Origin: Auanema rhodensis
Taxonomy: Eukaryota > Animalia > Nematoda
Reading direction: 5' to 3'
Assembly: GCA_964057225.1 (NCBI GenBank)
Contig: OZ059895.1
Location: 19,158,001-19,222,000, forward strand
DNA: 64,000 nucleotides
The notes under the pieces are model-generated. The model saw nothing but the letters and a program-made list of their open reading frames with translations. It was not told the DNA's origin and ran no database searches. Made by a program: the position numbers and the translations under genes. This document shows, piece after piece, positions 7,167 to 64,000 of this stretch. Every line of letters begins with the position of its first letter. Positions within the stretch are counted from its first letter, which is position 1.

Positions 7167-7543
<377 letters not shown>

Positions 7544-7778
7544 AATTTACAGAATACCTCGGTACATCTTTATTTTGAACACAACGACGTGTTTCGTTTA
7601 AAATATAGCTAATGTTATTATTTCTCTTTCTTGCTGTATGTTTCGAGAATTTACAAGGATATTGTTTATAGTACTAATCTGTGCAATCTGAAAAAGAGAC
7701 GAAGAGACATGAACCACAGTGGAGCAAAAATGTGAGTAAATAAGGAGTCAAAACAGGAGAAAAGAGAAAAAATGAATA

Positions 7779-8527
<749 letters not shown>

Positions 8528-9997: not shown

Positions 9998-10117
9998 GAA
10001 AGAAAGAGAGAGAAAGAAAGAAAAAAAGAGAGAGAGAAAGAGAGAGCGCAAGAGAGAGAGAGAAAGAAAAGAGAGAGAGAGAGAGTAAGAGAGACAGAGA
10101 GAGAGAGAAAGAGAGGG
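9998..10117 (+). repeat. Degenerate (AG)n microsatellite
   Basis: Purine-rich AG repeat tract. Confidence 0.85.
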
Positions 10118-21894: not shown

Positions 21895-24432
21895 ATGATG
21901 TCCAAGGAAGTACTAACAAAACTTCGCTCATTGTTTAACTGTGCTGAAGTGTTAAAAAATAGTAATGGCCATGCCTTGGATGCTTTTATTCTTCCAAGCA
22001 CAGATAGCCATCAGGTATAGCTTCATACTTTATGAATTCTAAATATAGCTTTTCTAGAGTGAGTACTTGTCCGATTATGATTTTCGTGTTCGATTCTTAT
22101 CTGGTTTTTCTGGTAGTAATGCTTATGTCATAGTTACTCAGAATGAAGCTCTTCTTTTTACTGATGGACGCTATTTTGATCAGGTGGAAAAACCGAAGAA
22201 GAGGTGCAATAACACTGTTAATATTAGGCAGAAAAAGAACTTGCTCATGGATGGACATTAATGAAATCTGGTCTCCCGGGGTCTCTTACTCCTAACGAAT
22301 GGTTGATTAAAAACTTGCCTGCTGCAAGCTATGTTGGATTTGATCCTTTTCTTTCGACTTACTGTATGCTCTAAAGGTTAAGATGCATATTTTGATATTT
22401 TTGTTATAGTGGAAGTGAAGAAAATGCTGGAAGACTTTGAAGGCCTCAAGTTTAATACTGTCCCCGTGGCCCCTAATCTAGTTGACATGATTTGGAATAC
22501 TAGACCAATTCGTCCCACTCAAGAAGTATTTCAATAAAACTAATTAAATTTCAAGAATCTTATTTTAGATTATTGCTCTTCCTGTGGAGGTTACAGGTAA
22601 ATCTATTCAAGAGAAGCTTGAAGAGATTCGACTAAAATTAGACGAGAATAAATGCTCAGCTGTTATTTTTTGCGCTTTAGATGACATTATGTGTAAGTTA
22701 ACACTTTTCCTCCCCAGCTTCAATACTTTTTAAATGTTTTTGAAGCTTTATTGTTTTCTTCATTAACTTTTTAGGGACTTTAAATATTCGTGGAGCTGAC
22801 ATTCCATATAACCCTCTTGCATATTCTTATTTATTAGTATCCCTAGAGTCTGCTACTCTATTCATCGATTCCGTCAAAGTACAAGACAAGGTTTGATCAT
22901 CGTTGTACACATTTTACAAATGTTTCAGGTGAGGCATCACTTGAAAAATATTGATATTGTCAACTATGATGACACTGTATCTTATTTATCTGACTGGCAA
23001 GGAAAGCAAAGACAAGTCAATCCCTCCCATCGAGTATTATTGTGATTTAAGAAAAATAACTTTTATGGTCACTTGAGGTTTTCGTCCCTGTGTCATCTAG
23101 TTATGCTATCGGGCATATTTTTGCGGATAGCCTGATTACAGATGTTTCTCCTGTACAAGTTTTGAAAGCAGTGAAAAACCCAGTCGAGATGGAAGGAATG
23201 CGTAGAAGTCACGTGAGTATCTTCCTTTCAATAAACATTATATTCCTTTATAGATAAGAGATAGTGCTGCTCTCATTGAATTTTTTTATTGGCTTGAACA
23301 AAATGTCCTGAGTGGGGCAACTCTTAGCGAAATCGAGGTTGCAAAAAAGGTGATTGAATTGAATTTATTATTTATACCTATTATCGATTTAGGTTGATAG
23401 AATTAGGGCAGCTCAAGAACATTATGTTGATTTGAGGTAATTTGATTATTTTTACGACTTTGCATCTTCTGAAATTACAGTTTTTCAACTATATCTGCTG
23501 CTGGAGAACATGCTGCTTTACCTCATTACCATACTCAAGGGGACGAAGGAGAAAAAAAAATCACTAAAGAACAAGTTTATCTCTGCGATTCCGGTGCTCA
23601 TTACTTGTAACTTAATGTAATTACGGTGTGGGTTTGTACTGCTGGTTTAATGTTTTAGAGATGGTACAACTGATGTTACTCGGACTGTTTTGATTGGAGA
23701 CCCTTCAAAAGTGAATCCAGACTTTGTGTTTCATAATACTTTAGTCTTGAAAGGACATATTAGTTTGGCTATGACTAAATTTCCTGAAGGAATATTAGGT
23801 ATGTTTTGTGAAAATATTTTACTATTTCATTTCATAGGTAGCCGCTTGGATTCATTCACAAGACACGCGCTCTGGCAAGCTGGTCTTGATTTTGGACATG
23901 GGACTGGACATGGTGTTGGACACTTCTTGAATGTGCACGAAGGGCCAAGTATCAGACCATTCTCTGTATGATGATTTTATTCTTCATTTCAGTAAGTATT
24001 GGATATCGTGTAGTATTGCCTGGTGGACAGATTAGGCCAGGGCAAGTTCTTACAATCGAGCCTGGCTTTTATTTACCTGGAAGTTATGGAATTCGAATCG
24101 AAAACTGTTATGAGGTTTTGTTAGTTCTCATAAAGTTATAACTATATTTATTCCAGACTGTACGTACTAGTGTGTTATCCGGTGCTCACAATTTCTTGAC
24201 TTTTAAAACATTAACTTTGGTTCCTATCCAAACATCTATTCTTGATAAGACTCTTCTTACAGCACAAGAAGTTTATTTTTTTAGATTATTGAAGATGCTA
24301 ATAAGTATATTGTAGGTTCAATGGCTTAATGCTTATCATTCTGAAGTTTTGTCCGTTGTAGGACCTGTGCTTCTAAGCAAAGGTAAAATTCGAGAGCACG
24401 AGTGGCTCGAGAAAAACTGTGGTCACATCTAA
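21895..24432 (+). CDS. app-1: Xaa-Pro aminopeptidase 1 (aminopeptidase P, M24B)
   Basis: PSTDSHQSEY, FLSGFSGSN, TDGRYF, DSGAHY.DGTTDVTRT, FGHGTGHGVGHFLNVHEGP and TIEPGFY..G.YGIRIEN. Confidence 0.95.
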
Positions 24433-51345: not shown

Positions 51346-51695
51346 TTCATAAAGTTGTATTGATAATCATTAATAAACATTCTATATTGAGAGTTTATTG
51401 TTACTTTAAAGTAGTCAAGCCTGTTGGATGTTTCGTATTTTCCTTGGTTAATTTATAAGGTTAATTTATAAACAAAAAAAAATATATGTGCAGAATGCGT
51501 ACGGCGTTCCATTTGCAGTTTTTTCACACAATAGCTGTCATGTTTAAACATATGAGTTATTTTGTTTATAATTAAAATGAGATTTGATGGATTGGTAGAC
51601 AAGCATTATATTACACATTATGTCATAGTATTTTCTGCTCACAATGCCAGCAATAGAATTCAATTTAAATTTTGCAGCATACAGTTTCGTGTCGA

Positions 51696-53027
51696 ATGGA
51701 ATCTCAACTTATAGGTATAGCTTGTTGTGCAATTTCTGCTATTTTTTTTGGTAGCATGTTCGTTCCTGTGAGAAATTGCAATATTGGAAATGGTTAGTAG
51801 TGTACTGAAGAAAATTTCCTTAAATATACTGTCTCTATGTTCAGGAATATTTTTTCAATGGGTCATGTCATCAGCTATAATCTTGGTTGGGTTTATCATC
51901 TATGCAAAAAACAACTTTCTAGGTTTCTATCCTATTGCCATGCTAGGAGGCGCATTCTGGACAATAGGTTGCTATATGTTTTTGTATAATGTTGTTTATT
52001 TATATTTAGGAAATAGTACCGCTGTACCTATTATCCAAAGAGTGGGCATGGCTATGGGTATTTTAATCTGGAATACTACTAATTGCCTATCAGGATGGGC
52101 ATGTGGTCGTTTTGGACTCTTCGGCACAAAGCCTCATCACCCAACTAATTCAATCTTGAATTATTTCGGGCTCACTTTAGTAGTTGTGGGGTAGTTCTGG
52201 AATCATTCTCTAAAAGTACTTAGCATTCTTGCAGAGGATTTGTTTTCACTTTAGTTCAAAATTCAAAGGATGAAGAAAAAACTGTCTCTATAGAATTACA
52301 AGTTTTATCTTCTATTATTTTTATTTTTCTTCTTTAAATTTAGAAGAGTCAAAAAGAAGACACTTTGCTAAAAGAGACTGCCGAAACTGCTGAACAAGAT
52401 TATGGTTCACAATATTCGTCTAGAGAACGCTTTGTGTAAGTTCAAAGGTTTCAAACATTAAAAAAAATATATAAACATTAAGTGGAGTTTTCTTGGCAAT
52501 ATTTGCTGGGTTTTTCTATGGAATTACATTTGTTCCTGTTAATTACATGACTGATAACCCTCACAAATTTCCATCTTATCCACAAGATGGGCTTAGTTAT
52601 GTATTTTCTCATTTTTCTGGAATATATATTACTTCATCAGTATTGATGCTAGCGTATACAGCATTTGCGTAGGTGATTCTGTTTGAAAATTATATTATTT
52701 ATTAAACTGTACAGAAAGAACAAACCGTTTATATCAGCTCGCTTAATCTTACCATCGTTTGCGACTGGTTTGATGTGGGCGGTAGCTCAATGTTCTTTTT
52801 TTGTTGCTAACCAACTTTTATCACAAGCAATTACATTTCCAATTATTACTATGTTACCAGGTTGTATAGCATCATTATGGAGCTTCTTCTTTTTTAAGGA
52901 AATAACGGTAAACACGTATAAATTTCACATTAAACAAAAAGTTTAGGGAATCAAAAATGTTGTAACTACTTCCATTGGCATACTTATAACTATGCTCGGA
53001 GTTGTGATCGTTGCAATATCAAAGTAG
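51696..53027 (+). CDS. TMEM144: TMEM144 / drug-metabolite transporter family protein
   Basis: FFGSMFVPV..GNGIFFQWVM, FYPIAMLGGAFWTIGNSTAVPII, GWACGRFGLFG, YVFSHFSGI and LSQAITFPII. Confidence 0.9.
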
Positions 53028-53263
53028 TTTAATTCTAGCATCTTATCTTGATTTTGACCATTGTGTTGTTATGCATATATGGCTTTAAGCATTTCGAGAC
53101 ACCTGTAATAATAGTCTGTTCTAATAAATCTATCTAAACCACGATAATACCACAACATATCCAGTGAAACAGAGAAATTCAATTCTTAGTTTACTGCTAA
53201 TACATATAATTAACCTAATTTTCGACTATTAACTCGAACATATAATGAACATATGATATATTG

Positions 53264-53384
53264 TTTGCTCAGGCTTAGCCAAGGCAGAAATATTAGAAAA
53301 CTGTGAACATTTGATTTGATGTTGACAATACTTGCAAAAAAAGTTAATTTATAAATACTATCGTATTGGCTCAGCCTGAGCAAA
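53264..53384. other. Pair of inverted 19-bp degenerate palindromes (candidate DNA-elimination break motifs)
   Basis: TTTGCTCAGGCTTAGCCAA (53264-53282) and TTGGCTCAGCCTGAGCAAA (53366-53384) are reverse complements at 18/19, and each is itself palindromic about GGC/GCC. The repeat is seen directly; the function is inferred. Confidence 0.55.
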
Positions 53385-53427
53385 TGTTATACATAACAAA
53401 TCTACGAAGCTCGGAAAGACGCATCGA

Positions 53428-53572
53428 ATGACTTTGAAATTTACGTGAACTTTAATTTATGCTAATTAAATGTACACGTGATGCGCACATGGTATGTAAC
53501 TCGCTTCCCCTGAAAGATAAAGAGATGCGATTTTCAAATTTGATTTCCCCGTGTCCATATTAGTCTAAAAAC
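53428..53572 (-). repeat. Inverted partial copy of the 176-bp satellite monomer
   Basis: Reverse complement of about 145 bp of the monomer with a few substitutions. Confidence 0.93.
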
Positions 53573-53750
53573 GGCATAAATTAAAGTTCACGTAAATTTG
53601 AAATTCATGGTAACCATACGAAATTCATGGTAACCATAATTCGTTGCATTTGACGACTCATATGAACAAAAATCGATTTAATCAATATTAGCCATAAGGG
53701 GCGTGCCCTCAGAATATGCTAATTTCCTTAATTTTCTAAAATTTTTTCCT

Positions 53751-56700
53751 TAAATTTGAAATTCATAGTAACCATACACCGATATCAATAATGTTTTGTT
53801 TTTAGACTAATATGGACATGGGGAATCTAATTTTGAGAACCGCATCTTTTTATCTTTCACGGGAAGCGAGTTACATACCATGTGCACATCACGTGTACAA
53901 TTAATTAGCATAAATTAAAGTTCACGTAAATTTCAAAGTCATGGTTACCACGCACCAATATCAATAAAAATTCGTTTTTAGACTAACATGGACATGGGGA
54001 ATCTAATTTTGAAAACCGCATCTTTTTATCTTTCACGGGAAGCGAGTTACATACCATGTGCACATCACGTGTACATTTAATTAGCATAAATTAAAGTTCA
54101 TGTAAATTTGAAATTCATGGTAACCATACACCGATATCAATAAAAATTTGTTTTTAGACTAATATGGACATGGGGAATCTAATTTTGAAAACCGCATCTC
54201 TTTATCTTTCACGGGAAGCGAGTTACATACCATGTGCACATCACGTGTACAATTAATTAGCATAACTTAAAGTTCACGTAAATTTCAAAGTCATGGTTAC
54301 CACGCACCAATATCAATAAAAATTCGTTTTTAGACTAACATGGACATGGGGAATCTAATTTTGAAAACCGCATCTTTTTATCTTTCACGGGAAGCGAGTT
54401 ACATACCATGTGCACATCACGTGTACATTTAATTAGCATAAATTAAAGTTCATGTAAATTTGAAATTCATGGTAACCATACACCGATATCAATAAAAATT
54501 TGTTTTTAGACTAACATGGACATGGGGAATCTAATTGTGAAAACCGCATCTTTTTATCTTTCACGTGAAGCGAGTTACATACCAAGTGCACATCACGTGT
54601 ACGTTTAATTAGCATAAATTAAAGTTCACGTAAATTTCACAGTCATGGTTACCATGCACCAATATCAATAAAAATTTGTATTTAGACTAATATGGACATG
54701 GGGAATCTAATTTTGAGAACCGCATCTTTTTATCTTTCACGGGAAGCGAGTTACACACCATGTGCACATCACGTGTACATTTAATTAGCATAAATTAAAG
54801 TTCACGTAAAATTCAAAGTCATGGTTACCATGCACCAATATCAATAAAAATTTGTTTTTAGACTAATATGGACATGGGGAATCTAATTTTGAAAACCGCA
54901 TCTCTTTATCTTTCACGGGAAGCGAGTTACATACCATGTGCACATCACGTGTACAATTAATTAGCATAACTTAAAGTTCACGTAAATTTCAAAGTCATGG
55001 TTACCATGCACCAATATCAATAATGTTATGTTTTTAGACTAACATGGACATGGGAAATCTAATTTTGAAAACCGCATCTTTTTATCTTTCACGGGAAGCG
55101 AGTTACATACCATGTGCACATCACGTGTACAATTAATTAGCATAAATTGAAGTTGACGTAAATTTCAAAGTCATGGTTACCATGCACCAATATCAATAAA
55201 AATTTGTTTTTAGACTAATATGAACATGGGGAATCTAATTTTGAAAACCGCATCTCTTTATCTTTCACGGGAAGCGAGTTACATACCATTTGCACATCAC
55301 GTGTATATATAATTAGCATAAATTAAAGTTCACGTAAATTTCAAAGTCATGGTTACCATGCACCAATATCAATAAAAATTTGTTTTTAGACTAATATGGA
55401 CATGGGGAATCTAATTTTGAAAACCGCATCTCTTTATCTTTCACGGGAAGCGAGTTACATACCACGTGCACATCACGTGTACAATTAATTAGCATAAATT
55501 AAAGTTCACGTAAATTTCAAAGTCATTGTTACCATGCACCAATATCAATAAAAATTTGTTTTTAGACTAATATGGACATGGGGAATCTAATTTTGAAAAC
55601 CTCATCTCTTTATCTTTCACGGGAAGCGAGTTACATACCATTTGCACAGCACGTGTACAATTAATTAGCATAAATTAAAGTTCACGTAAATTTCAAAGTC
55701 ATGGTTACCATACACCGATATCAATAATGTTATGATTTTAGACTAATATGGACATGGGGAATCTAATTTTGAAAACCGCATCTCTTTATCTTTCACGGGA
55801 AGCGAGTTACACACCATTTGCACATCACGTGTACATTTAATTAGCATAAATTAAAGTTCACGTAAATTTCAAAGTCATTGTTACCATGCACCAATATCAA
55901 TAAAAATTTGTTTTTAGACTAATATGGACATGGGGAATCTAATTTTGAGAACCGCATCTCTTTATCTTTCACGGGAAGCGAGATACATACCATGTGCACA
56001 TCACGTATACAATTAATTAGCATAAATTAAAGTTCACGTAAATTTCAAAGTCATGGTTACCATGCACCAATATCAATAAAAATTTGTTTTTAGACTAATA
56101 TGGACATGGGGAATCTAATTTTGAAAACCGCATCTTTTTATCTTTCACGGGAAGCGAGTTACATACCATGTGCACATCACGTGTACAATTAATTAGCATA
56201 AATTAAAGTTCACGTAAATTTCAAAGTCATGGTTACCATGCACCAATATCAATAAAAATTTGTTTTTAGACTAATATGGACATGGGGAATCTAATTTTGA
56301 AAACCGCATCTTTTTATCTTTCACGGGAAGCGAGTTACATACCATGTGCACATCACGTGTACATTTAATTAGCATAAATTAAAGTTCACGTAAATTTCAA
56401 AGTCATGGTTACCACGCACCAATATCAATAAAAATTTGTTTTTAGACTAATATGGACATGGGGAATCTAATTTTGAAAACCGCATCTCTTTATCTTTCAC
56501 GGGAAGCGAGTTACATACCATGTGCACATCACGTATACAATTAATTAGCATAAATTAAAGTTCACGTAAATTTCAAAGTCATGGTTACCATGTAGCAATA
56601 TCAATAAAAATTTGTTTTTAGACTAATATGGACATGGGGAATCTAATTTTGAAAACCGCATCTCTTTATCTTTCACGGGAAGCGAGTTACATACCATGTG

Positions 56701-59700
56701 CACATCACGTGTACAATAAATTAGCATAAATTAAAGTTCACGTAAATTTCAAAGTCATGGTTACCACGCACCAATATCAATAAAAATTTGTTTTTAGACT
56801 AATATGGACATGGGGAATCTAATTTTGAGAACCGCATCTCTTTATCTTTCACGGGAAGCGAGTTACATACCATGTGCACATCACGTGTACAATAAATTAG
56901 CATAAATTAAAGTTCACGTAAATTTGAAATTCATGGTAACCATACACCGATATCAATAATGTTTTGTTTTTAGACTAATATGGACATGGGGAATCTAATT
57001 TTGAAAACCGCATCTCTTTATCTTTCACGGGAAGCGAGTTACATACCATTTGCACATCACGTGTATATATAATTAGCATAAATTAAAGTTCACGTAAATT
57101 TCAAAGTCATGGTTACCATACACCGATATCAATAATGTTATGGTTTTAGACTAATATGGACATGGGGAATCTAATTTTGAAAACCGCATCTTTTTATCTT
57201 TCACGGGAAGCGAGTTACATACCATTTGCACATCACGTGTATATATAATTAGCATAAATTAAAGTTCACGTAAATTTCAAAGTCATGGTTACCATGCACC
57301 AATATCAATAAAAATTTGTTTTTAGACTAATATGGACATGGGGAATCTAATTTTGAAAACCGCATCTCTTTATCTTTCACGGGAAGCGAGTTACATACCA
57401 TTTGCACATCACGTGTATATATAATTAGCATAAATTAAAGTTCACGTAAATTTCAAAGTCATGGTTACCATACACCGATATCAATAATGTTATGTTTTTA
57501 GACTAATATGGACATGGGGAATCTAATTTTGAAAACCGCATCTCTTTATCTTTCACGGGAAGCGAGTTATTACATACCATTTGCACATCACGTGTATATA
57601 TAATTAGCATGAATTAAAGTTCACGTAAATTTCAAAGTCATGGTTACCATGCACCAATATCAATAAAAATTTGTTTTTAGACTAATATGGACATGGGGAA
57701 TCTAATTTTGAAAACCGCATCTTTTTATCTTTCACGGGAAGCGAGTTACATACCATGTGCACATCACGTGTACAATTAATTAGCATAAATTAAAGTTCAC
57801 GTAAATTTCAAAGTCATGGTTACCATGCACCAATATCAATAAAAATTTGTTTTTAGACTAATATGGACATGGGGAATCTAATTTTGAAAACCGCATCTCT
57901 TTATCTTTCACGGGAAGCGAGTTACACACCATTTGCACATCACGTGTACATTTAATTAGCATAAATTAAAGTTCACGTAAATTTCAAAGTCATTGTTACC
58001 ATGCACCAATATCAATAAAAATTTGTTTTTAGACTAATATGGACATGGGGAATCTAATTTTGAAAACCGCATCTCTTTATCTTTCACGGGAAGCGAGTTA
58101 CATACCATTTGCACATCACGTGTATATATAATTAGCATAAATTAAAGTTCACGTAAATTTCAAAGTCATGGTTACCATGCACCAATATCAATAAAAATTT
58201 GTTTTTAGACTAATATGGACATGGGGAATCTAATTTTGAAAACCGCATCTTTTTATCTTTCACGGGAAGCGAGTTACATACCATGTGCACATCACGTGTA
58301 CAATTAATTAGCATAAATTAAAGTTCACGTAAATTTCAAAGTCATGGTTACCATGCACCAATATCAATAAAAATTTGTTTTTAGACTAATATGGACATGG
58401 GGAATCTAATTTTGAAAACCGCATCTCTTTATCTTTCACGGGAAGCGAGTTACACACCATTTGCACATCACGTGTACATTTAATTAGCATAAATTAAAGT
58501 TCAAGTAAATTTCAAAGTCATTGTTACCATGCACCAATATCAATAAAAATTTGTTTTTAGACTAATATGGACATGGGGAATCTAATTTTGAAAACCGCAT
58601 CTCTTTATCTTTCACGGGAAGCGAGTTACATACCAATTGCACATCACGTGTATATATAATTAGCATAAATTAAAGTTCACGTAAATTTCAAAGTCATGGT
58701 TACCATGCACCAATATCAATAAAAATTTGTTTTTAGACTAATATGGACATGGGGAATCTAATTTTGAAAACCGCATCTCTTTATCTTTCACGGGAAGCGA
58801 GTTACATACCATTTGCACATCACGTGTATATATAATTAGCATAAATTAAAGTTCACGTAAATTTCAAAGTCATGGTTACCATGCACCAATATCAATAAAA
58901 ATTTGTTTTTAGACTAATATGGACATGGGGAATCTAATTTTGAAAACCGCATCTCTTTATCTTTCACGGGAAGCGAGTTATTACATACCATTTGCACATC
59001 ACGTGTATATATAATTAGCATGAATTAAAGTTCACGTAAATTTCAAAGTCATGGTTACCATGCACCAATATCAATAAAAATTTGTTTTTAGACTAATATG
59101 GACATGGGGAATCTAATTTTGAAAACCGCATCTTTTTATCTTTCACGGGAAGCGAGTTACATACCATGTGCACATCACGTGTACAATTAATTAGCATAAA
59201 TTAAAGTTCACGTAAATTTCAAAGTCATGGTTACCATGCACCAATATCAATAAAAATTTGTTTTTAGACTAATATGGACATGGGGAATCTAATTTTGAAA
59301 ACCGCATCTCTTTATCTTTCACGGGAAGCGTGTTACACACCATTTGCACATCACGTGTACATTTAATTAGCATAAATTAAAGTTCACGTAAATTTCAAAG
59401 TCATGGTTACCATACACCGATATCAATAATGTTATGTTTTTAGACTAATATGGACATGGGGAATCTAATTTTGAAAACCGCATCTCTTTATCTTTCACGG
59501 GAAGCGAGTTATTACATACCATTTGCACATCACGTGTATATATAATTAGCATGAATTAAAGTTCACGTAAATTTCAAAGTCATGGTTACCATGCACCAAT
59601 ATCAATAAAAATTTGTTTTTAGACTAATATGGACATGGGGAATCTAATTTTGAAAACCGCATCTTTTTATCTTTCACGGGAAGCGAGTTACATACCATGT

Positions 59701-62700
59701 GCACATCACGTGTACAATTAATTAGCATAAATTAAAGTTCACGTAAATTTCAAAGTCATGGTTACCATGCACCAATATCAATAAAAATTTGTTTTTAGAC
59801 TAATATGGACATGGGGAATCTAATTTTGAAAACCGCATCTCTTTATCTTTCACGGGAAGCGAGTTACACACCATTTGCACATCACGTGTACATTTAATTA
59901 GCATAAATTAAAGTTCACGTAAATTTCAAAGTCATTGTTACCATGCACCAATATCAATAAAAATTTGTTTTTAGACTAATATGGACATGGGGAATCTAAT
60001 TTTGAAAACCGCATCTCTTTATCTTTCACGGGAAGCGAGTTACATACCATTTGCACATCACGTGTATATATAATTAGCATAAATTAAAGTTCACGTAAAT
60101 TTCAAAGTCATGGTTACCATGCACCAATATCAATAAAAAGTTGTTTTTAGACTAATATGGACATGGGGAATCTAATTTTGAAAACCGCATCTCTTTATCT
60201 TTCACGGGAAGCGAGTTACATACCATTTGCACATCACGTGTATATATAATTAGCATAAATTAAAGTTCACGTAAATTTCAAAGTCATTGTTACCATGCAC
60301 CAATATCAATAAAAATTTGTTTTTAGACTAATATGGACATGGGGAATCTAATTTTGAAAACCGCATCTCTTTATCTTTCACGGGAAGCGAGTTACACACC
60401 ATTTGCACATCACGTGTACATTTAATTAGCATAAATTAAAGTTCACGTAAATTTCAAAGTCATTGTTACCATGCACCAATATCAATAAAAATTTGTTTTT
60501 AGACTAATATGGACATGGAGAATCTAATTTTGAAAACCGCATCTCTTTATCTTTCACGGGAAGCGAGTTACATACCATTTGCACATCACGTGTATATATA
60601 ATTAGCATAAATTAAAGTTCACGTAAATTTCAAAGTCATGGTTACCATGCACCAATATCAATAAAAATTTGTTTTTAGACTAATATGGACATGGGGAATC
60701 TAATTTTGAAAACCGCATCTCTTTATCTTTCACGGGAAGCGAGTTACATACCATTTGCACATCACGTGTATATATAATTAGCATAAATTAAAGTTCACGT
60801 AAATTTCAAAGTCATGGTTACCATGCACCAATATCAATAAAAATTTGTTTTTAGACTAATATGGACATGGGGAATCTAATTTTGAAAACCGCATCTCTTT
60901 ATCTTTCACGGGAAGCGAGTTATTACATTCCATTTGCACATCACGTGTATATATAATTAGTATAAATTAAAGTTCACGTAAATTTCAAAGTCATTGTTAC
61001 CATGCACCAATATCAATAAAAATTTGTTTTTAGACTAATATGGACATGGGGAATCTAATTTTGAAAACCGCATCTCTTTATCTTTCACGGGAAGCGAGTT
61101 ACATACCATTTGCACATCACGTGTATATATAATTAGCATAAATTAAAGTTCACGTAAATTTCAAAGTCATGGTTACCATACACCGATATCAATAATGTTA
61201 TGGTTTTAGACTAATATGGACATGGGGAATCTAATTTTGAAAACCGCATCTTTTTATCTTTCACGGGAAGCGAGTTACATACCATTTGCACATCACGTGT
61301 ATATATAATTAGCATAAATTAAAGTTCACGTAAATTTCAAAGTCATGGTTACCATACACCGATATCAATAATGTTATGTTTTTAGACTAATATGGACATG
61401 GGGAATCTAATTTTGAAAACCGCATCTCTTTATCTTTCACGGGAAGCGAGTTACATACCATTTGCACATCACGTGTATATATAATTAGCATAAATTAAAG
61501 TTCACGTAAATTTCAAAGTCATGGTTACCATGCACCAATATCAATAAAAATTTGTTTTTAGACTAATATGGACATGGGGAATCTAATTTTGAAAACCGCA
61601 TCTCTTTATCTTTCACGGGAAGCGAGTTACATACCATTTGCACATCACGTGTATATATAATTAGCATAAATTAAAGTTCACGTAAATTTCAAAGTCATGG
61701 TTACCATACACCGATATCAATAATGTTATGTTTTTAGACTAATATGGACATGGGGAATCTAATTTTGAAAACCGCATCTCTTTATCTTTCACGGGAAGCG
61801 AGTTACATACCATGTGCACATCACGTGTACAATTAATTAGCATAAATTAAAGTTCACGTAAATTTCAAAGTCATTGTTACCACGCACCAATATCAATAAT
61901 GTTATGTTTTTAGACTAATATGGACATGGGGAATCTAATTTTGAAAACCGCATCTCTTTATCTTTCACGGGAAGCGAGTTACATACCACGTGCACATCAC
62001 GTGTACATTTAATTAGCATGAATTAAAGTTCACGTAAATTTCAAAGTTATTGTTACCATGCACCAATATCAATAAAAATTTGTTTTTAGACTAATATGGA
62101 CATGGGGAATCTAATTTTGAGAACCGCATCTCTTTATCTTTCACGGGAAGCGAGTTACATACCATGTGCACATCACGTGTACAATAAATTAGCATAAATT
62201 AAAGTTCACGTAAATTTCAAAGTCATGGTTACCATGCACCAATATCAATAAAAATTTGTTTTTAGACTAATATGGACATGGGGAATCTAATTTTGAAAAC
62301 CGCATCTTTTTATCTTTCACGGGAAGCGAGTTACATACCATTTGCACATCACGTGTATATATAATTAGCATAAATTAAAGTTCACGTAAATTTCAAAGTC
62401 ATGGTTACCATGCACCAATATCAATAAAAATTTGTTTTTAGACTAATATGGACATGGGGAATCTAATTCTGAAAACCGCATCTTTTTATCTTTCACGTGA
62501 AGCGAGTTACATACCAAGTGCACATCACGTGTACGTTTAATTAGCATAAATTAAAGTTCACGTAAAATTCAAAGTCATGGTTACCATGCACCAATATCAA
62601 TAAAAATTTGTATTTAGACTAATATCGACATGGGGAATCTAATTTTGAGAACCGCATCTTTTTATCTTTCACGGGAAGCGAGTTACACACCATGTGCACA

Positions 62701-64000
62701 TCACGTGTACATTTAATTAGCATAAATTAAAGTTCACGTAAAATTCAAAGTCATGGTTACCATGCACCAATATCAATAAAAATTTGTTTTTAGACTAATA
62801 TCGACATGGGGAATCTAATTCTGAAAACCGCATCTCTTTATCTTTCACGGGAAGCGAGTTACATACCATGTGCACATCACGTGTACAATTAATTAGCATA
62901 ACTTAAAGTTCACGTAAATTTCAAAGTCATGGTTACCATGCACCAATATCAATAATGTTATGTTTTTAGACTAACATGGACATGGGAAATCTAATTTTGA
63001 AAACCGCATCTTTTTATCTTTCACGGGAAGCGAGTTACATACCCTGTGCACATCACGTGTACAATTAATTAGCATAAATTAAAGTTCACGTAAATTTCAC
63101 AGTCATGGTTACCATGCACCAATATCAATAAAAATTTGTTTTTAGACTAATATGGACATGGGGAATCTAATTTTGAGAACCGCATCTTTTTATCTTTCAC
63201 GGGAAGCGAGTTACACACCATGTGCACATCACGTGTACATTTAATTAGCATAACTTAAAGTTCACGTAAATTTCAAAGTCATGGTTACCATGCACCAATA
63301 TCAATAAAAATTTGTTTTTAGACTAATATGGACATGGGGAATCTAATTTTGAAAACCGCATCTCTTTATCTTTCACGGGAAGCGAGTTACATACCATGTG
63401 CACATCACGTGTACAATTAATTAGCATAAATTAAAGTTCACGTAAATTTCAAAGTCATGGTTACCATACACCGATATCAATAAAAATTTGTTTTTAGACT
63501 AATATGGACATGGGGAATCTAATTTTGAAAACCGCATCTCTTTATCTTTCACGGGAAGCGAGTTACATACCATGTGCACATCACGTGTACAATAAATTAG
63601 CATAAATTAAAGTTCACGTAAATTTCAAAGTCATGGTTACCACGCACCAATATCAATAAAAATTTGTTTTTAGACTAATATGGACATGGGGAATCTAATT
63701 TTGAGAACCGCATCTCTTTATCTTTCACGGGAAGCGAGTTACATACCATGTGCACATCACGTGTACAATAAATTAGCATAAATTAAAGTTCACGTAAATT
63801 TGAAATTCATGGTAACCATACACCGATATCAATAATGTTTTGTTTTTAGACTAATATGGACATGGGGAATCTAATTTTGAAAACCGCATCTCTTTATCTT
63901 TCACGGGAAGCGAGTTACATACCATTTGCACATCACGTGTATATATAATTAGCATAAATTAAAGTTCACGTAAATTTCAAAGTCATGGTTACCATACACC
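53751..64000 (+). repeat. 176-bp tandem satellite array (~58 monomers, running off the window end)
   Basis: GACTAA[T/C]ATGGACATGG recurs at 53805, 53981 and 54157 (period 176). Copies are near-identical, and four carry a 3-bp insertion. Confidence 0.99.

Follow-up and report, generated by a model that had tools for sequence, protein, structure and literature searches.

The question raised by this locus is whether the pair of inverted palindromes that separates a block of ordinary genes from a satellite array marks a place where Auanema rhodense breaks its germline chromosomes and discards their ends. In the window, that is, the whole 64-kb stretch of DNA analysed here, the left 53 kb carries ordinary nematode genes and the right end is occupied by a 176-bp tandem satellite. 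Between them is a 135-nt inverted-repeat unit (53257-53391), referred to here as the doublet. Judged from its sequence and from what has been published on this species, we consider it highly likely that the locus is a programmed DNA elimination boundary, with gene-rich DNA retained on the left and a terminal block of AT-1 satellite on the right. In all probability the doublet itself is among the break sites published for A. rhodense.

The elimination system is already known: a sequence-defined break, GGC-seeded healing, the loss of megabases of satellite and fail-safe sites were all published between 2022 and 2026. In A. rhodense, each of the 28 internal break sites carries a 29-nt palindrome termed SFE (Sequence For Elimination), in which conserved residues surround a variable central base and the flanks are AT-rich (Gonzalez de la Rosa et al., Aug 2026, bioRxiv 10.64898/2026.08.27.747507). 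Read depth in that study drops roughly eight-fold on the eliminated side, from about 236x to about 29x. Autosomal breaks fall where gene-rich DNA gives way to repeat-rich DNA, and on chromosomes 1-3 there are second high-scoring motifs at most 1.1 kb downstream; at some of the extra motifs a few reads do carry telomere sequence (bioRxiv 10.64898/2026.08.27.747507). In Oscheius tipulae the SFE is degenerate and palindromic over 29 bp, with a 3-bp spacer between GGC (nt 11-13) and GCC (nt 17-19), and it was shown by experiment to be necessary and sufficient for breakage and elimination. The break falls at the SFE centre, the ends are resected and GGC/GCC prime telomere addition on both sides, and alternative SFEs within the eliminated DNA serve as a fail-safe (PMC13060919; Dockendorff et al. 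2022, bioRxiv 10.1101/2022.08.19.504554).

The doublet is built around the 19-nt sequence TTTGCTCAGGCTTAGCCAA, found at 53264-53282 (+), and an inverted copy at 53366-53384. As originally described, the two are identical at 18 of 19 positions (one mismatch), and their start-to-start spacing is 102 bp. No further match to TTTGCTCAGGCTTAGCCAA was found in the 64-kb window at up to three mismatches, and none was expected by chance, as estimated for the 19-mer pair from 100 dinucleotide-preserving shuffles of the window. The inverted repeat lengthens to 26 nt at 85% identity (53257-53282 and 53366-53391), giving the whole unit two arms of 85% complementarity separated by 83 nt. Both copies contain the core GGCT-N-AGCC, which is a form of GGC-N3-GCC. 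In the gene-side copy it is composed of GGC (53272-53274), TTA and GCC (53278-53280), and in the satellite-side copy of GGC (53368-53370), TCA and GCC (53374-53376). The GGCTNAGCC core occurs twice in 64 kb, both times in the doublet, where 0.09 occurrences are expected. Read in the same orientation, the two copies have identical GGCT and AGCC, and over the 19 nt that they share they differ at the central base alone, which is T in the first copy and G in the second. Other GGC-N3-GCC sites of the window, at 21967 and 32222, were rejected as candidates, since they have neither the GGCT/AGCC core nor any similarity to the arms.

When centred on this core, the doublet resolves into two 29-nt degenerate palindromes. 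SFE-1, on the gene side, spans 53262-53290 about a centre at 53276, with the core GGCT-T-AGCC at 53272-53280; SFE-2, its inverted copy on the satellite side, spans 53358-53386 about a centre at 53372, with the core GGCT-C-AGCC at 53368-53376. The spacer between them (53291-53357) is 79% A+T and has no other copy in the window. Nine of the 14 dyad pairs are complementary in SFE-1, a score of at least nine being reached by just 0.5% of the 29-mers of the window, and seven of 14 in SFE-2, a score of at least seven being reached by 6.9%. Aligned to each other, the two 29-mers agree at 20 of 29 positions in inverted orientation and at 14 of 29 in direct orientation. The A+T content of the motif flanks is 76% and 79%, versus about 67% in the window. 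A separate feature nearby is a 20-nt direct repeat with 80% identity (53246-53265 and 53304-53323, 58 bp apart), by which the sequence just 5' of SFE-1 reappears in the spacer; it could be due to chance in AT-rich DNA or be the remnant of an older duplication.

Both 29-mers share with the O. tipulae SFE the placement of GGC at nt 11-13 and of GCC at nt 17-19. The outer arms differ: nt 1-7 are TGTTTGC here, and the O. tipulae consensus begins with TTTA and carries AGGT at nt 4-7. With the A. rhodense SFE the doublet shares the 29-nt palindrome, the AT-rich flanks and the location at the border of gene-rich DNA and AT-1, together with a second motif a short way downstream, as on chromosomes 1-3; the base at which its two cores differ may correspond to the variable centre of the published motif. 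This assignment follows the published verbal description of the A. rhodense motif rather than a PWM score. On that description no difference between the A. rhodense SFE and the doublet was apparent, and its identity with one of the listed sites is what we infer. The earlier suggestion of an SFE-like site, possibly doubled, is thus borne out in the sense that both copies appear to fit the published SFE format at the gene/satellite switch.

An inverted-repeat unit of this size could also be a small transposable element, and a MITE or fold-back had been named as the alternative from the beginning. Under this explanation the 135-nt unit would be an element of one of these two types that inserted beside the satellite, the 26-nt arms being its terminal inverted repeats, and its likeness to the SFE would be incidental. 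The general architecture is compatible, as both are short AT-rich units between inverted repeats: in the doublet, 83 nt of AT-rich DNA are enclosed by the 26-nt inverted arms (85%), TA dinucleotides stand at both of its ends, and as single-stranded DNA it folds into a stable hairpin (-23.6 kcal/mol, z = -4.65). However, a blastn-type comparison combined with a mismatch scan found no second copy of either the arms or the inner core in the 64-kb window, and no target-site duplication longer than 2 nt was found beside the arms, the TA being trivial in DNA this rich in A+T. In addition, GGC-N3-GCC is present in the unit exactly and in the register known from published SFEs, the unit stands at the gene/AT-1 border, its arms are SFE cores, and their sole difference within the shared core falls on the variable central base of the SFE. 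A transposon is therefore a very improbable source of the doublet, and the alternative found no support in the window. Two broader searches gave no match: an Rfam scan of the window detected no RNA family, and an exact-DNA scan of metagenome and prokaryote genome collections with the gene-side arm was negative, as expected.

The interpretation of the doublet as an elimination site depends also on what lies to its right. The satellite array extends over 53751-64000 (+) and runs off the end of the window (TRF period 176, 58.2 copies, 95% matches); its units are mostly 176 nt long, with four spacings of 179 nt. The published FISH probe for AT-1 matches 29 satellite units at one or two mismatches, where no match is expected. 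These comprise 28 units of the array (+, at most two mismatches) and one unit of the array edge (-); none of the units gives a perfect match, the best having one mismatch. The three FISH probes for the X chromosome have no match in the window at up to three mismatches. Because the AT-1 probe matches the satellite and the X probes do not, the window very probably spans an elimination boundary on an autosome of A. rhodense, although the mismatches to the probe leave a slight chance that the source is a very close relative. AT-1 is an autosomal terminal repeat that was seen by FISH to be gone from somatic nuclei from the 12-cell stage (bioRxiv 10.64898/2026.08.27.747507). The satellite to the right of the doublet is accordingly predicted to be germline-limited DNA, as had been proposed before its family was recognised, and the match to the AT-1 probe, together with the published FISH, favours that view. 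No telomere array was found in the window. This was expected, since telomeric reads were removed before the published A. rhodense germline assembly was built (bioRxiv 10.64898/2026.08.27.747507).

The transition into the array is not clean. The first satellite-derived DNA is a partial AT-1 unit of 145 nt at 53428-53572, which is inverted with respect to the array (-), with 93-94% identity to array units by blastn and the AT-1 probe match at 53470-53497 (-). It is followed by a scrambled edge (53574-53750, +), which begins with 44 nt of satellite in forward orientation (53574-53617) bearing a tandem duplication of 20 nt (53600-53638) and continues with a non-satellite insert of about 130 nt. 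The second 19-nt copy of the doublet ends 44 bp short of position 53428, in agreement with the claim that the doublet stands just before the first satellite. The doublet could in principle be the result of chance or of replication slippage at the array edge, with no function. The inverted unit, the 20-nt duplication and the insert are what this explanation can draw on, but neither the 19-mer pair (0 expected) nor the core (0.09 expected) is readily given by chance, and the sequence of the doublet is unrelated to the satellite. We find chance or functionless debris hardly credible as the origin of the doublet.

Several smaller observations concern the array. The non-satellite insert is bounded by copies of GAAATTCATGGTAACCATA. 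It contains, at 53638-53650, an exact 13-nt word, AATTCGTTGCATT, in common with the published FISH probe for the X-terminal repeat XT-2; by a rough estimate about 0.03 such matches are expected by chance, and the word may hint at a shared ancestry of autosomal and X satellites. At the start of the array, neighbouring units alternate between two sequence variants. A reading of the satellite as a higher-order repeat was dropped, given that the lag-identity test was confounded by the 179-nt units.

On the left side of the doublet no satellite was found in positions 1-53250 by blastn with array units. The last gene on this side encodes a TMEM144-family transporter (51784-53027, +; Pfam PF07857). 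Three of its exon ORFs, at 51784-52194, 52493-52672 and 52683-52907, match PF07857 with E values of 9.5e-38, 2.5e-18 and 2.8e-27, respectively, and between them account for positions 27-306 of the 332 in the profile. The terminal exon, read from the sequence, occupies 52947-53027 and closes with a TAG stop at 53025-53027; an earlier exon probably lies near 51672. The sequence AATAAA at 53123-53128 is the likely polyadenylation signal of this gene. The stop codon is 237 bp before the first 19-nt copy, which agrees with the roughly 240 bp first given, and 235 bp before the 29-nt SFE-1. For the neighbouring genes, namely the TMEM144-family exons and a Janus/Ocnus gene, the nearest homologues are in rhabditid and strongylid nematodes, with 51-63% identity. 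The protein searches gave no A. rhodense entry for this locus, and exact matching of four ORFs near the site against public assemblies had no hit. Further to the left, at 7168-8508 and 10001-10115, long TC/GA microsatellites reach about 730 bp and are strongly skewed between the strands.

What this locus itself shows is a motif that is unique in the window, where that motif lies and which satellite follows it; cutting, resection, telomere priming and the somatic loss of AT-1 are known from the published work. By combining the two, a course of events can be proposed. From around the time when the embryo has 12 cells, a factor in the somatic blastomeres would recognise the 29-nt SFE and a double-strand break would be made at its centre. 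Resection would leave 3' overhangs ending in GGC(T), where telomerase could prime the synthesis of (TTAGGC)n. SFE-1 is predicted to be the main site of breakage and of telomere addition: the left fragment, with its end at about 53275-53278, would become the somatic chromosome end, everything to the right would be lost, and the TMEM144-family gene with its likely polyadenylation signal would be kept intact. The cut left fragment would end in GCTCAGGCT and would then be extended with TAGGC repeats. The germline sequence already reads AGGCTTAG at 53271-53278, eight nucleotides identical to telomere repeat with the G-strand running rightwards, able to cap the gene-bearing left side, exactly as had been noted in the original prediction. 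For this reason the telomere junction would be ambiguous over 53271-53278, and the first base to differ in somatic DNA would be 53279.

We read SFE-2 as a spare, that is, an alternative SFE in inverted orientation located 96 bp into the eliminated side. If both SFEs were cut, the short intervening piece would be lost with the satellite, and if SFE-1 failed, SFE-2 could still trim the chromosome. That the doublet is used as a break site, and that SFE-1 rather than SFE-2 becomes the somatic end, is what we infer from this arrangement. The two motifs could instead be genuine SFE matches that do not set the somatic end as proposed, either since the end is at SFE-2 or since the gene block is itself within eliminated DNA. 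A. rhodense has 15 high-scoring SFEs within eliminated DNA and four unused ones in retained DNA (bioRxiv 10.64898/2026.08.27.747507), and the better local dyad, with 10/14 pairs about 53375, is found in SFE-2, both of which speak for this possibility. Nevertheless, the doublet lies at the kind of gene-rich to repeat-rich transition at which the published autosomal breaks fall. The species eliminates 3% of its genes, half of them transposon-related (bioRxiv 10.64898/2026.08.27.747507), whereas the block to the left is composed of ordinary genes. Moreover, if two sites are cut, the one on the gene side sets the retained end. A somatic end elsewhere than SFE-1 is on these grounds distinctly unlikely, and SFE-1 remains the predicted end.

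O. tipulae trims only its chromosome ends (0.6% of the genome), whereas A. rhodense removes about 61% of the genome, mostly satellite. The elimination motifs of Caenorhabditis and Mesorhabditis belari, also rhabditine nematodes, share with the A. rhodense SFE sequence-defined, base-precise breaks that are healed by telomeres, but by the description in the A. rhodense paper they differ in sequence and structure, the M. belari motif being bipartite (bioRxiv 10.64898/2026.08.27.747507). The chromosomal break regions of Ascaris share somatic breakage, telomere healing and satellite loss. They differ in that telomeres are added over 1-2 kb with no motif (bioRxiv 10.64898/2026.08.27.747507), while a discrete palindrome is found here.

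Set against these systems, the locus offers added detail rather than discovery. A programmed DNA elimination boundary appears to be recognisable by a reader from the raw letters alone, and the locus gives the probable base-level anatomy of one A. rhodense site, with a main SFE, an inverted spare, a scrambled edge and the last retained gene. What is new is minor: that the spare copy is inverted, and that the motif has a telomere-like periodicity; the former, and the ladder of dyad centres at 3-nt intervals described below, may be of interest to specialists. The inverted orientation of the spare and the 96-bp spacing have no mention in the available part of the A. rhodense paper (bioRxiv 10.64898/2026.08.27.747507).

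The periodicity became apparent in the position of the dyad centres. The palindromes had first been centred on a single GGC/GCC, with scores of 6/8 and 8/9 flanking pairs; those scores are reproduced, with 7/9 pairs about 53273 and 8/9 about 53375. This centring is, however, 3 nt off the published GGC-N3-GCC register. Accordingly, the 102 bp given as the distance between the centres is real as the spacing of the two copies, but the centres of the published motif, at 53276 and 53372, are 96 bp apart. Both choices of centre are palindromic because the dyads form a ladder with peaks every 3 nt: in copy 1, the centres 53273, 53276, 53279 and 53282 have 7, 9, 6 and 6 of 14 pairs, respectively, and in copy 2 the centres 53372 and 53375 have 7 and 10 of 14, so that the strongest dyad is off the GGC-N3-GCC centre. 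An interval of 3 nt is what a palindrome made of 6-nt repeats set head to head would give. Each of the four SFE arms agrees with (TTAGGC)n at 8-10 of 14 positions, all in one register and with the G-strand towards the centre, and three of the four reach 9/14, a score attained by 1.5% of background 14-mers. The centres at 53273 and 53375 are secondary dyads caused by this telomere-like 6-nt periodicity.

One possible origin of such a structure is that the SFE descends from a decayed head-to-head telomere junction, which is the geometry of two fused chromosome ends. If so, elimination sites would go back to ancient fusions of telomeres with other telomeres or with satellite, the factor that recognises the SFE might derive from a telomere-binding protein, and fold-back repair of such a junction would have generated the inverted doublet. 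We regard this descent as rather unlikely. A plainer reading, suggested by analogy, is that the telomere-like bases may have been selected as back-up primers for telomerase, as the O. tipulae authors propose for the telomere-like bases of that species (PMC13060919).
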